This document shows, piece after piece, positions 33,033-39,000 of a DNA stretch of 64,000 nucleotides. Source of the DNA: Takakia lepidozioides (Eukaryota > Plantae > Bryophyta); contig CM060731.1 of the NCBI GenBank assembly GCA_030704615.1, positions 63,426,001 to 63,490,000 of the forward strand, read 5' to 3'. The position numbers and the translations under genes are program-made. Under the pieces are notes generated by a model. It was not told where the DNA came from, did no database searches, and saw only the letters and a program-made list of their open reading frames with translations. The number at the start of each line of letters is the position of its first letter. Positions within the stretch are counted from its first letter, which is position 1.

Positions 33033-36000
33033 TCACTTCCAAAGTTTCTTTAGAGACATATTTTTATCTGTCTCCTTTTTCATAACTTTGGCCACAGCCA
33101 TCTCAAAGTCCTCCTGGGTCACATGTACCCGTCGCTCCCGCAATGCAAACATGCCTGCCTCTGTGCAGACAGCCTACAAACCGCACCAGCAAGTAAAATA
33201 AGTCAAAGTTTGAAAAATGCTTACAATTACTCGTGACAGTAACAAGATTCATGATAACAGAGAAAGGACATGGTAAAAGAAAACTTGATTAAATTAAAGA
33301 ACTATATAGCCCAAAACAGCTTATGGATCTAATCTGCTTCCTGAACAAAGAACGGATAATATGGATAATAATCAAACCATCACAGTATCGAGACAAGAAA
33401 CATGGAAGTTATACCTTCAGCTCAGCACCTGACGCACCACCCATCTTTTCCGCAATCTTCTTAAGATCGATGCCTCGCATCAAATTCATCCTTCTTGAGT
33501 GGATTTTGAGAATGTCCAGTCGTGACTGTTTTCCCATCGACCAACAACAGTGTCAGACTTGCGTAACATTTTGACGTGACCTTCATTTCAAAGTCAAAAC
33601 ACATGTACAAACATAGCCCAGAACATGAACAGAACATGGTAAAAGCATATAAACCGACACATAGCTAATTACCTCTTCACTTGGATTGGGGAACTCAATT
33701 TTGCGGTCAATACGCCCTGGGCGAAGAAGGGCTTGATCAAGGATGTCAATGCGATTTGTTGCCATCAACACCTGGTAGTGAAGAGAAGCAAAAGTAGAAA
33801 GTCAATGTGTTGATATCAAATTTAAGGACTAGAAAAGAGACTGAACAAGGAGAAAGCCATACTGATCACATCAAGCAGGATGTAGCCTTGTGGCCTACCT
33901 AGCAAGAATGTACTCATAAGACGTTGTTTGCCGTAGCCTTGCAGCCATTAGACTCCGCCCCCAGTTTGGGCAGAAGAAAAGGGAACAGCACTGCCTTTGT
34001 GAGGTGCTCACTCCAGTAGTGGGATTTACCGTGATATAAACAATTTGTTCACCCATGCATCAATCTGTTGTGCATAATCTTAGACCCAAGAGGGCCAGGG
34101 CTTTAGGTTCAGCCTCGACACTTATGACCTAGCACACAGAATGTAGTCATGAGACGTTATTGTCCATAGGCCTGTGGCCATTGACCCCACGCCCAGTTTG
34201 GGCAGAACAAGAGGGAACAAACACTACCTGTGTGAGGGGCTCACTCCAGTAGTGGGACTTACCTTAACATAAACAACTGGTTCCAGCTTTCCAGATTTCC
34301 TCTAGAAAGCCCTTCACACAAGCATCAATCTGCTGTGTGAGCTGCCCAGCAATTAGACCCCAACAGGCCAGGGCTTTAGGCTCAGCCTCAAGATTTTGAA
34401 AGTTGGCGGACAGAGAGGTGCAGGGACTACCCAGACATTTGATCAGAAAACGGCTATTGTCTCCAGGCCGCCCACACATCGGGCATTGATGATCTCTCTT
34501 TCCTCTCTGCATGTGTTTATTGTTGAAAGGTAGGCTCCCCGCCCTGAGTTCAAATTTCAGTCTAGTGCTGAGGATAGGTAGGCCCTTCAGGTAATTCTTA
34601 AGATCCTCACCCATTTGACCTAGCACAGAGAGAATGTACTCATAAGACGTTGTTTGCCGTAGCCTTGTGGCCATTGACCCCGCGCCCAGTTTGAGCGGAA
34701 ACCAAAGGGACAGAACCTACCTCTGTCAGGGGCTGACATTGGTAGCAAGACTTACCTTTATAAATAGACTTAATTCGGGTTTTCCAGATATCCTCTAGAA
34801 ATCCCTTCACACAAGCATCAATCTGCTGTGTGTGATTTGCCCAAAAACTAGGCCTCAGAAGGGCCTGGGCTTTTGGCTCAGCCTCGAGACTTTCAAAGTT
34901 GGTGAACAGAGGTACAGGCACAATTCTCTTGATAGATTGGAGGAGAGCTTCTCTCTGGTGAGAGTACCCCGGACAGTGAATCAGAGAGAGAAAGAGATTG
35001 TACTCATAAGACGTTGTTTGCCATAGCCTTGTGGCCATTGACCCCGCGCCCAGTTTGAGCGGGAACAAAAGGGACAGAACCTACCTCTGTCAGGGGCTGA
35101 CGTTGGTAGTAAGACTTACCTCCATATAAAGAATTAATCCGGGTTTTCCAGATATCCTCTAGAAATACCGTCACACAAGCATCAATCTGCTGTGTGTGAT
35201 TTGCCCAAAAACTAGGCCTCAGGAGGGCCTGGGCTTTTGGCTCAGCCTCGAGACTTTCAAAGTTGGTAAACAGGGGTACAGGCACAATTCCCTTAATAGA
35301 GTTGAAGAGAGCGTCTCTTTGGTGAGAGAACCCCGGACAGTGTATCAGAAAATGAATACTGTCTTCAGATTGCCCACACAGCGGGCAATTGCACTCTCCC
35401 TTTCCTCTCTGCTTCTGTTTGCTGTTCAAAGGTAGGCTTCCTGCCCTGAGTTTAAATTTCAGTCTAGTGCCGAGAGTGGGTAGACCCTTGAGGTCATCCA
35501 AGATGTCCTCCCCCATGTCACAGACTGGAAACAAGTTCAGGGAAGTTTTCTGCCTAACTTCATTTTCATCAGACAATCTCATGGCAACAGACATGGCTGA
35601 GGACACTACAGCCTCTAAGTCAGATTTATCCAGCAGGGTCAAGACTTGCGGATCCAGGTCCAGGTCCTTGAGGATCTCTTCTACTCTCTTCTGCCAGGAC
35701 TTAGCCTGTTTGACAGGGCGGTCCTGTTTCCAAGATATAGAGTCGATTGACTTAGGATATCTGGTGTTGGGCATATGTTGCAGCTGACCCCACCATCTGA
35801 CCTTGAATTCATCTCGTCGGGAGCTTAAGGACGGAATGCCAAACTGACCCCGAACAGCCACATTGGCTGTTTTGGAGCATGCTGACATACACTCCTTAAG
35901 CACCCACACTTGACAGGATTCTAGAGACTTAGCCTGGTTGGAGTTATCAACCCATATAGCAGATCCGTACTCCAAGGCAGGTCTAATAACGCGACAAAGC

Positions 36001-39000
36001 ATGGTTTTCTTAACCTCAGAGTTGACCCCTCTGCAGTGGAAAAATTTAGTGAGCCCCAGAGCTTTGCCCTTGCCAGTTTGAACAACTTTCCGGATATGTG
36101 CATCCCAATTACAATTGGAGGAGAACTCAACGCCCAGGTAAGCGTAGGAAGGGAGGACCGGGATCTCTTGGTTACCCCACTGCCACTTAAGATCACTTCC
36201 TCCCTCTCCTCTGTCGTTGAATGCTACCACTGCACATTTGCTGACATTAGCCTCTAGCCCCCAAAGATCAAAGTATCTCTTCGCGCAATCAATCAACTCC
36301 TGGAGATTGGTTGGAGTCTCCCCTATGCCTGCGAAGTCATCCGCAAACATAAGGGCTGGTATGGTGGTATCACCCACCCTTAACCCAAATCCCTCACTTT
36401 CCACATCCTCGAGGAGTTGATTGATGAAAACATTGAAGAGCAGAGGGGAGAGTACATCCTTGAGCTACACCTTGGTCTATGTCAAAGAAGTTGGACTTCT
36501 GTCCGTTAACAGTGACACAGCTTTGGTGTGAGCATACAAGTTGTGGACAACTCTCCACATCTTTCCCTTGATCCCACAAGACCAGAGGCGGAACCATAGG
36601 CCATCTCTCCACACTGTGTCATAAGCCTTTTTGACATCCAGGAAAAAGACACAAGTGGGTTTCCCATCTTTTTTCCTGGATAATCTGGCTTAGAGTGAAG
36701 ATATGATCCACACAGCCCCTGTTTCGCTGAAAGCCAGCTTGGCCTTCGTGGAAACAACCTCTAGACTCCAGATCAACCTCGAGACGAGTACTTATAACTC
36801 TGCAGAATGTCTTGCCAACAGCATTGAGGAGCGTGATGCCACGGTAGTTCCCCGGTTCTTCTCTGTCACCCTTCTTGTATAGATTGACAATGACCCCCTG
36901 TCGCCAGCAAAAGGGGATCATTTCAGTCTTCCAGATAAGGTTAAAGAGGAGAACTAGGGCCTCTACCATGGGATCGCCACCGTGCTTGATAAGCTCGTTG
37001 ACAATACCATCAGGTCCACCAGCTTTATATCCATTTAAATGTTCAATTGCTTCCACAATCTCAGAAGAACTAATGGGAGCGTTATAAGCCATTGAAATAT
37101 ACTCCAGTTCATCATGGCTGTTTTGAATCATAGGAACAGTTTTTCCAACTGTGTCCCTCCATTCAGCAGAAGACCCCTCACTGTTAGACCTAGAAGTTCT
37201 GCCAAGGATACTGTAGTGAGTTTCAAAGGTTTTGACAATGTCAACCGATGAAGTCACCACTGCACCTTTAGTAGTCTTCAGCGCTTGTACTTGCTGACCG
37301 TTTTTCGGCTTGTACAAACGTTGAAGGGCCAACCAGAATTTCTTGTCATTACCACCATGGTGGTTTGAGTTTATTTCACTGTATAACTTGTCCCAGTATA
37401 ATTTCTTCTGAGACCTAACAAGCTGATTGATATCTTTACGGAGCTGGTAGTACCTCGCCCACAATTCTCTGTTGGTTTTCAAATTGCAGCACTCTTTATA
37501 GAGGGCTCGTCTCTCCGCTATCTTGAGTTTAATCTCATTAGTCCACCAATTAACTGCTCTACCGCAGACAATTAGTTTCCTCCCAATGATCTTGTCAGCC
37601 ACGGAGGAAACGAAACTCTCCCAAGAGTCCACTGCTCTCTCGACTTCTTTTCTTGCGTTAACAGAGCGTGACTGAAGTTCTTGGAGCGATTGGACAAAAT
37701 GAGGGAGAGAGCCTTGACCTCCTCATTGTGGAATTTTTCTACGCGCCACTTCCGAATCGAACGTTTCACAGATCTCTTGGTGGTGGGAAAACACCTTTTG
37801 ATCTCAGTCCAAACCAGGAAGTGGTCAGAGGTACCAATATCAGTTCTGTCGATCAACACATTGGCACACTGGGGGAACAAAATTTTGTCCATTAGAGAGA
37901 GAAAGAGAGAGACAGAGAGAGAGGTGACCTTGATCTTATTTGAGGCTTCAAACCCATCAAGCTGGTTTAGGAGCTCCAGCATAGTCCGTTGGACCTCACT
38001 GTCCCCATTGCCATTGCCAGACTCCATGCGGGCTGACCCTATGCTGTCAATCTCATCCATGAAAATGATTGAAGGCGCATGCTCCCTGTGTCAGGCAACA
38101 CAGATTCGTAAAGCCATTAAGTGCTTAGGATCTGTACCTCACAAGGTGTGGATGGTCTCCTGAGCACTCAAGGAGCAGAATAGATAAAGGTATAGCTGCT
38201 GCAGCATTTCTGTAGTGTTGTTCAGGTGCACCTCAGTTGTACTAGAAGCAAAGGAGGAAGCAACAATAGAATGCGCTGTTACCTAGCCATGACGAACAAC
38301 TCGCGAACCATGCGAGAACCCTCTCCAATGTACTTCTGCACAAGCTCTGACCCCGAGACTCGAATAAAAGTACAGTCCGTGTGATGTGCCACTGCCCTAG
38401 CAAGCAATGTCTTCCCTGTCCCAGGAGGCCCATACAGCAAAACACCCTGGTTGCCGGCAAAGCAGATATCTGTTAGTACACCAGCATTTTTACACATTAC
38501 CTGTCAAACAAGCTGAAGAAAGAAAAGAGATTACCTGTACAAAATTTCATATGACCTCAGAAACAAAATGCTGGTGGATGAGGCTGGAAAAGTGACTGCC
38601 AGGACCATTGCTATGTGAAGGTGTTAAGGACATTTGTCTCCATGTAAAGCTACAGAATGGACATCCACATTGCCCTCAACACAGTAAGGGAGTGACAAGA
38701 CAAAAGGGGAAATAGAGGTTGTACCTTAGGTTGAGCAATACCCAAGCTCTCAAAAAGCTCTGGATGCTTGATCGGCAGCTCTATCACCTACACTCAGACA
38801 AATACTCCATTGTTAGTGAGACCCCTTGCGAAACAGAGAAACTTGTTAAACAAAATAAAGACTAGTCGGACCATCAACGACACAAGCCCATACCCTCAAC
38901 AACCTCCAAACCCTAAAATTCAACACCTCAAACCTAAGAATGACAGAGCAAGCAGCAATCTTCAGGAGTGTGTGTGAAAGCATTGTAGATACAACTCATC

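Follow-up and report, generated by a model that had tools for sequence, protein, structure and literature searches.

Five LINE copies lie head-to-tail in intron 6 of an RPT6-type gene of Takakia lepidozioides, within a 64-kb window (the whole stretch of DNA that was analysed). The array was probably built by five separate target-primed insertions, all at a single TC tract immediately past the intron donor, of an APE-type LINE family that is RTE-like and has a TC tail, with the newest copy upstream. Separate events, duplications at the unit boundaries and a gradient in age proxies along the array are observed.

Layout of the array in RPT6 intron 6

The host gene is encoded on the minus strand and its intron, at 33772-37928, measures 4157 bp. 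The label intron 6 agrees with six upstream coding exons, read by eye with the exons unjoined. In the exons 3' of the intron the open reading frame continues to a stop codon. The earlier note had called the gene essential, which holds for RPT6 as a gene in general rather than on the basis of this particular copy. Read along the minus strand, the order proposed in that note, a TC tract followed by five head-to-tail LINE units with distinct 5' ends, is borne out as follows.

37929..38085, minus strand: RPT6 exon 6 (5' of the intron); top match of the 44-aa translation to RPT6/PSMC5 chains (e.g. 8amz_J, E=4.5e-21), also Pfam AAA
37928-37927, minus strand: GT donor, directly after the exon 6 end at 37929
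37894..37926, minus strand: native TC tract whose start lies 3 nt past the donor's GT; the final 15 nt, 37908-37894, serve as upstream copy of the L1 target-site duplication
34999..37893, minus strand: L1, 2895 bp, 5'-truncated, with the end of APE, RT (Pfam RVT_1), a zinc knuckle at the C-terminus and the stop codon
34982..34998, minus strand: L1 tail and downstream copy of the 15-bp L1 target-site duplication (TCTCTTTCTCTCTCT)
34635..34981, minus strand: L2, 347-bp 3' fragment of an older lineage of subfamily A
34617..34634, minus strand: flank F1 (TTCTCTCTGTGCTAGGTC), containing the L2 downstream duplicate (TCTCTCTG) and the L3 upstream duplicate
34142..34616, minus strand: L3, 3' fragment of 475 bp belonging to subfamily B, in which 42 bp are privately deleted
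34126..34141, minus strand: flank F2 (TTCTGTGTGCTAGGTC), identical to F1 at 14/15 positions, ungapped
33909..34125, minus strand: L4, 3' fragment of 217 bp that has several internal deletions and diverges most among the scorable units
33896..33908, minus strand: flank F3 (TTCTTGCTAGGTA), retaining TGCTAGGT and differing from F2 by a 3-nt indel and one substitution
33881..33895, minus strand: L5, 15-nt remnant corresponding to the element's second hairpin, 14 nt identical (14/14 against L2)
33867..33880, minus strand: candidate decayed fourth flank copy (ATCCTGCTTGATGT), a weak likeness picked out by reading (about 10/14 positions against F3, with gaps)
33673..33771, minus strand: RPT6 exon 7 (3' of the intron), Pfam AAA, scanned within the ORF 33583-33771

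About 109 nt of plain intron separate L5 from the end of the AG acceptor at 33772. LINE fragments and flanks are all that the array part of the intron contains, and every copy is oriented in the gene's sense direction. The 22-nt motif of the element's 3' end occurs five times in the window against zero expected. L5 is probably a tiny old insertion that has lost 23 nt of its 3' end. For a neighbouring Copia ORF, an exact look-up gave no recorded match.

The flanks between the units are target-site duplications and not part of the element. TGCTAGGT occurs four times in the 64 kb, three of them exactly at unit junctions, and the locus-specific flank that carries it follows L2, L3 and L4. The unlinked copies M1, C42385 and C4530, as well as L1 itself, have TC-rich 3' ends without TGCTAGGT, and the reading of the flank as part of the element consensus was rejected. 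The duplication around L1 is perfect over 15 bp, with the same TTT interruption on both sides; repeat pairing matches 37891-37908 with 34980-34997 at 17/18 positions. The duplicates flanking L3 agree at 14/15 positions and those flanking L2 at 8/8. The recurrence of the flank described in the earlier note stands, with its coordinates corrected by a few bases from a range that was too short. The TC run noted between L1 and L2 is present, but it is L1's own downstream target-site duplication.

The LINE element and its target

The element looks RTE-like from its sequence. APE precedes RT: an ORF of M1 matches Exo_endo_phos_2 (E=3.9e-5, below the Pfam cut-off) just upstream of the RVT_1 ORFs, and a relative (L001) shows a strong Exo_endo_phos match followed by RVT_1, together with a weak zf-RVT match. 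The C-terminus carries a CCHC-type knuckle. A TGA stop codon lies 8 nt before the 3' end, which leads into a simple-repeat tail and no poly(A); a relative in L002 has GAGTA and then (TTA)4 at its end. The best named matches of the RT are Ectocarpus unnamed proteins (40-62% identity). Hairpins at the 3' end are conserved, show no compensatory changes and have unremarkable single-sequence fold z-scores. All copies in the window are 5'-truncated and none is full-length. No more copies came from a word search that used the 466-aa C-terminal ORF, nor from scanning metagenome contigs for exact matches to 41 nt of the element's 3' end. A protein-pattern scan of metagenome contigs gave 67 pattern matches and 0 relatives, while the feature search returned a generic RVT_1 signal only.

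Two groups of copies can be distinguished. L1 is 95-98% identical to the unlinked M1, which reaches further 5', and L2 is 92-95% identical to L1 and M1, groups with them in the ML tree and retains 7 ancestral states in common with B-type copies. L3 matches A copies at about 78% identity and the unlinked C4530 at 85-86%; L4 has about 78% identity to each other copy. L1/L2 and L3/L4 fall into different subfamilies with a bootstrap of 100, and resolution inside the B group is poor (43-50%). The description of L3 and L4 as diverged copies holds as far as their divergence goes, but they are members of a separate, well-supported subfamily group and should not be read just as L1-type copies that have decayed. 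Omega within subfamilies is 0.76-0.86, which indicates that decay is mostly neutral.

The tail reads WTCT(CT)n in seven aligned copies, and N1-N3 also have TC-rich ends. This TC tail is part of the element since M1 and C4530 carry it without TC upstream. TC is found on both sides of L1 and of C42385, the latter inserted within a plain (TC)n tract, and at the 3' end only in M1 and C4530. In addition, empty TC tracts exist in the window, for example at 1038-1059. Judging from these junctions, TC targeting is a preference and not a strict specificity.

The junctions suggest how the array would have formed. The bottom strand would be nicked within the TC tract or at its 3' edge, where the primer could pair with the UC-rich RNA tail, and the top strand would be cut some 8-15 nt downstream. 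In L3, L4 and L5 the resulting target-site duplication would be of the TCTSTGTGCTAGGT type, and in L2 and L1 it would consist of TC alone. The upstream duplicate, still joined to the long native TC tract, would stay the best landing site, so that later copies would have entered upstream of earlier ones. The array would then read from young to old in the 5' to 3' direction, the intron having grown from about 160 bp to 4.16 kb.

Order and origin of the insertions

Four proxies of age (private substitutions, ML terminal branches, duplication decay and internal deletions) all increase from 5' to 3'. Private changes amount to 5/335 sites in L1, 8-12/335 in L2, 13/174 in L3 and 21/174 in L4, with only four scorable units and with the L1-L2 and L3-L4 differences individually non-significant. 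ML terminal branches from L1 to L4 measure 0.017, 0.034, 0.076 and 0.096, lengths that also contain divergence of lineages outside the sampled copies. The age polarity claimed earlier is thus seen in every proxy, within a sample of four to five units and partly confounded by subfamily succession: because L1/L2 and L3/L4 belong to different subfamilies, part of their divergence reflects lineage and not age. L1 appears to be the youngest unit, although structure alone does not order it relative to L2, as either order yields the present sequence. The last base of the flank (C in F1/F2, A in F3) and AGGTC as the L5 5' end were considered for fixing the order and are given no weight, each allowing two readings.

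The same data could reflect repeated independent insertion with no rule of polarity, any TC-bearing junction being a target, the elements' own TC tails included, and the order arising from a small sample and subfamily succession. The TC run at the end of every copy re-creates the target, L2 landing in the 17-nt TC tail of L1 would give exactly the observed sequence, and subfamily confounds the age proxies. We regard this account as unlikely, though it is the one that survives best beside ours: the four independent proxies are all monotonic, a perfect order of four units having a chance of 1/24, and the M1/M2 pair in the same window likewise has its young copy upstream. The M1/M2 and N1/N2 pairs show the same construction as the array.

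The proposed restriction of reuse to the upstream duplicate is plausible; downstream sites may also have been re-targeted, since every element arrives with a TC tail. A stronger version, in which 5'-end growth is an enforced rule of the LINE family, each event regenerating the nick site at the native TC tract and the element's 3' end disabling the downstream duplicate, appears doubtful. If it were true, intronic stacks would be strict chronological records and in this bryophyte-type genome could order subfamily succession and date insertions; a sense-strand, near-splice-site bias would indicate targeting of transcribed pyrimidine tracts.

Independent target-primed insertion at one site is well supported by sequence comparison, and the earlier claim of separate insertions is upheld by distinct breakpoints, different subfamilies and the closer relation of L3 to the unlinked C4530 than to L4. 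L1 begins where the APE domain ends, and the 5' breakpoints of the other units in L1 coordinates are all distinct (L2 about 2547, L3 about 2380, L4 about 2640). A one-step origin, either by template jumping between RNAs or from a read-through transcript carrying the flank (3' transduction), would draw on the ability of non-LTR reverse transcriptases such as that of R2 to switch templates. Such an origin is very improbable and was rejected, since it conflicts with the duplications inside the array: every unit carries a flanking duplicate of its own, that of L1 being a private 15-bp sequence. Terminal branch lengths, moreover, spread about sixfold among units that also differ in subfamily, and the flank is seen behind members of both groups in the array (A-type L2, B-group L3 and L4) but behind none of the unlinked copies from these groups. 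Equally improbable is local tandem duplication or unequal crossing-over of a LINE-plus-flank unit, which would explain the same flank between units but was rejected for want of common breakpoints, with neighbours in different subfamilies and L3 sharing seven derived sites with C4530 against two with L4.

Relation to known LINE systems

Like RTE and RTE-X LINEs, the element encodes APE and then RT, ends in a short simple-repeat tail and has its stop codon 8 nt from the 3' end. RTE elements leave many 3'-only truncated copies bounded by target-site duplications, as here (PMC2887409), and RTE-X is the main LINE group of Ectocarpus (PMC12477816). Unlike RTE and RTE-X, this element has a C-terminal CCHC-type knuckle, and its duplications, at up to 15 bp, are longer than the 6-12 bp given for RTE.

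Polar head-to-tail LINE arrays are already known, so the novelty claimed for this one was overstated. In green algae, Zepp and ZeppL are described as tandem arrays made mostly of the 3' ends of 5'-truncated copies through successive insertions into earlier copies (PMC8226300, citing Higashiyama 1997). The present array shares with Zepp the stacking of 5'-truncated copies by successive insertion. However, Zepp is L1-type, carries poly(A) tails and builds large clusters at telomeres or centromeres, whereas the TC-tailed element in RPT6 makes a small stack inside a gene's intron, with a host-derived flank duplicated between units. The Drosophila HeT-A/TART/TAHRE elements also lie head-to-tail in one orientation, each addition placed 5' of the previous element so that position gives the order of arrival (PMC5537684). 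Those arrays, which serve the host, are extended at a free chromosome terminus with neither endonuclease nicking nor target-site duplication, in contrast to the internal, duplication-bounded array in the RPT6 intron, which has no evident function. The array displays the features of self-stacking, namely one orientation, head-to-tail order, independent 5' truncation and separate events.

Microsatellite-targeting LINEs (Togen at (TG)n, some HERO families and Zorro3 at poly-A) favour a repeat complementary to their tail and independently reuse a site (PMC4640811, PMC1965478). The element studied here differs in that M1 and C4530 lack upstream TC and that unoccupied TC tracts occur in the window. 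The comparison with CRISPR arrays made in the earlier note is purely one of form, growth from one end giving a chronology, and does not extend to repeat-spacer units, acquisition machinery, read-out or function. The intron contents examined were LINE fragments and flanks only, with nothing pointing to use of the record.

Overall, the array is a clean example of known LINE behaviour and represents no new mechanism and no new kind of system. It is a natural record in which successive subfamilies of a LINE with a simple-repeat tail struck one site at least four or five times and left duplications that are still legible, and shows a short plant intron growing about 26-fold in a housekeeping gene that is left unbroken. 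If the polarity held genome-wide, such stacks would provide an internal clock of relative age for the turnover of LINE subfamilies in bryophytes and a handle on the pairing of RNA tail and target in target-primed reverse transcription.

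Anatomy of the RPT6 intron array

Intron 33772-37928 (minus strand, 4,157 bp) is bounded by a GT donor and an AG acceptor, its limits coinciding exactly with those of the feature previously noted. Searched by itself, the translation of the upstream exon (exon 6) best matched the RPT6/PSMC5 chains of solved 26S proteasomes (8amz_J, E=4.5e-21), while exon 7, identified through a Pfam scan of ORF 33583-33771, and two more exons downstream carry the AAA ATPase on to the stop codon. The label intron 6 is reasonable because six coding exons lie upstream. The remaining RPT6 introns are a few hundred bases each, and intron 6 minus its LINE material amounts to about 160 bp. 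Re-reading of the intron limits, the five same-orientation units and the junction flanks found the array to have been accurately described in the earlier note.

Features of RPT6 intron 6, 5' to 3' on the minus strand
37926-37894, minus: TC tract, beginning 3 nt past the GT donor dinucleotide
37893-34999, minus: L1, end of the APE endonuclease domain, reverse transcriptase (RT), C-terminal CCHC knuckle and TGA
34981-34635, minus: L2, oriented as L1
34616-34142, minus: L3, oriented as L1
34125-33909, minus: L4, oriented as L1
33895-33881, minus: L5, oriented as L1; 15 nt, 14 of which match the second 3' hairpin of the element

The TGA stop of L1 lies 8 nt short of the element end, and the window contains five instances of a 22-nt motif from the 3' end, where none is expected. 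Two short hairpins within the final 25 codons of the LINE reading frame (34999-35075, minus strand, and equivalents) are conserved in both subfamilies, with one-sided changes only (C-G to U-G) and no compensatory pairs among the copies compared. Both tiny units of the family begin at or near the second hairpin, L5 at the hairpin itself and N2, a fragment outside the RPT6 intron, ~6 nt upstream of it.

Independent insertions and target-site duplications

Further copies of the same family occur elsewhere in the window.

Other LINE-family copies
26830-29885, plus: M1, 3.05-kb copy, 98% identical to L1
42385-42470, minus: C42385, 85-bp LINE 3' end inside plain (TC)n, flanked by (TC)10 on the upstream and (TC)6 on the downstream side
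6058-6190, minus: N1, decayed fragment, intron of an ABC-transporter-type gene
5980-6040, minus: N2, decayed fragment, intron of the same gene, adjoining N1 head-to-tail
5552-5596, minus: N3, decayed fragment, intron of the same gene
4536-4915, minus: C4530, decayed fragment occupying most of its intron in the same gene

The sequences indicate that the LINE units of intron 6 are independent events, as had been claimed. Their 5' ends lie at different element positions (L2 ~2547, L3 ~2380 and L4 ~2640 in L1 coordinates), and in a maximum-likelihood (ML) tree built on the shared 3' region a split with a bootstrap of 100 sets {L1, M1, L2} (subfamily A) apart from {L3, L4, C4530, N1} (B group). L3 has seven derived sites in common with the unlinked C4530 versus two with its neighbor L4, whose 5' breakpoint differs from its own. 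The tree split and these derived sites therefore exclude tandem duplication. A one-step origin by template jumping or read-through is excluded by the internal duplicates and by L1's private duplication.

The recurring flank is a target-site duplication and not element sequence, in agreement with the earlier proposal. The 64 kb contain four instances of TGCTAGGT, three of them directly after L2, L3 and L4; the flank is found behind A-type and B-group units alike. The unlinked copies end otherwise, M1 in ATCTCTCTCC, C42385 in TTCTCTCTCTCTCT and C4530 in TACTCTCTTTCTTCT; L1 ends in a TC run. A weak, decayed fifth duplicate possibly lies behind L5.

Duplications and divergence of the scorable units
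L1: TCTCTTTCTCTCTCT, 15/15 between copies, same TTT interruption on each side; private substitutions 5/335; ML terminal branch 0.017
L2: TCTCTCTG, 8/8 between copies; private substitutions 8-12/335; ML terminal branch 0.034
L3: TCTCTGTGCTAGGTC vs TCTGTGTGCTAGGTC, 14/15, ungapped; private substitutions 13/174; ML terminal branch 0.076
L4: TGCTAGGT retained, one 3-nt indel and one substitution; private substitutions 21/174; ML terminal branch 0.096

Age order and the TC tail

Private substitutions and terminal branches rise from L1 to L4, the branches containing unsampled lineage divergence and the B-group part of the tree being poorly resolved. Duplication decay (0/15, 0/8, 1/15, indel plus substitution) and internal deletions (absent from L1 and L2, one in L3, several in L4, most of the unit in L5) run in the same direction. 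Omega lies at 0.76-0.86 within subfamilies, in line with the neutral decay expected of inserted copies. L2 derives from an earlier A lineage, since it keeps seven ancestral states in common with B-type copies. The proposed core reading is mostly right: duplications and independent events stand and the upstream young pair is clearly distinct from the downstream old pair, but with four scorable units the finer order inside each pair is only suggestive. Junction sequences are compatible with either L1/L2 order, since the TC tail of L1 could itself have received L2.

The TC run itself is part of the element, as M1 and C4530 carry it at their 3' ends without TC upstream. A nick in a TC tract would free a bottom-strand primer with which the UC-rich RNA tail would pair, so that TC tracts would be favored, not required; the window also contains empty TC tracts. 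After insertion, the upstream duplicate would still be joined to the long native tract, and the downstream duplicate would have the element 3' end ahead of it. Re-use of the upstream duplicate is for this reason the simplest reading of the order, rather than a demonstrated rule. C42385, located ~2.3 kb 5' of the RPT6 start, is the clearest single example of TC-microsatellite insertion.

M1 extends further into the APE domain than L1 and carries a 72-bp deletion. It lies directly upstream of and head-to-tail with M2, an old fragment (71% identity) with its 5' end mid-element (pair at 26830-30200, plus strand), young upstream of old as in RPT6. A Copia pol ORF (23225-26395) lies just upstream of M1, and an F-box and kelch-like gene (30950-32120, minus strand) between M2 and RPT6. 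N1, N2, N3 and C4530 are spread over two introns of the ABC-transporter-type gene, all gene-sense, and the TC tail of C4530 merges into the acceptor pyrimidine tract. All intronic fragments seen in the window are sense-oriented, at only 3-4 independent loci.

Relation to known LINEs

Judged by sequence, the element seems to fit RTE-type LINEs, which it resembles in the order of its domains, a minimal 3' UTR, a tail of simple repeats and many 3' fragments (PMC2887409). Its closest named RT relatives are from Ectocarpus, in which RTE-X dominates (PMC12477816). Relatives on ENA eukaryote contigs (L001, L002) have RTs 47-49% identical. One (L001 3670-8630) is near full-length and comprises a 127-aa ORF upstream, APE, RT and a knuckle resembling zf-RVT; the other, from another genome (L002 7740-7830), has a similar GC-rich motif and behind it ends in GAGTA and then (TTA)4, so tail repeats vary between related families.

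Microsatellite preference and same-site re-use by LINEs are documented (PMC4640811; PMC1965478). Zepp is described as forming arrays of 5'-truncated LINE 3' ends by successive insertion (PMC8226300), and Drosophila telomeres are built on arrays growing at the 5' side of the preceding element (PMC5537684). The 5'-growth polarity is a candidate general rule; the RPT6 intron array is a well-preserved case of already known LINE behavior.
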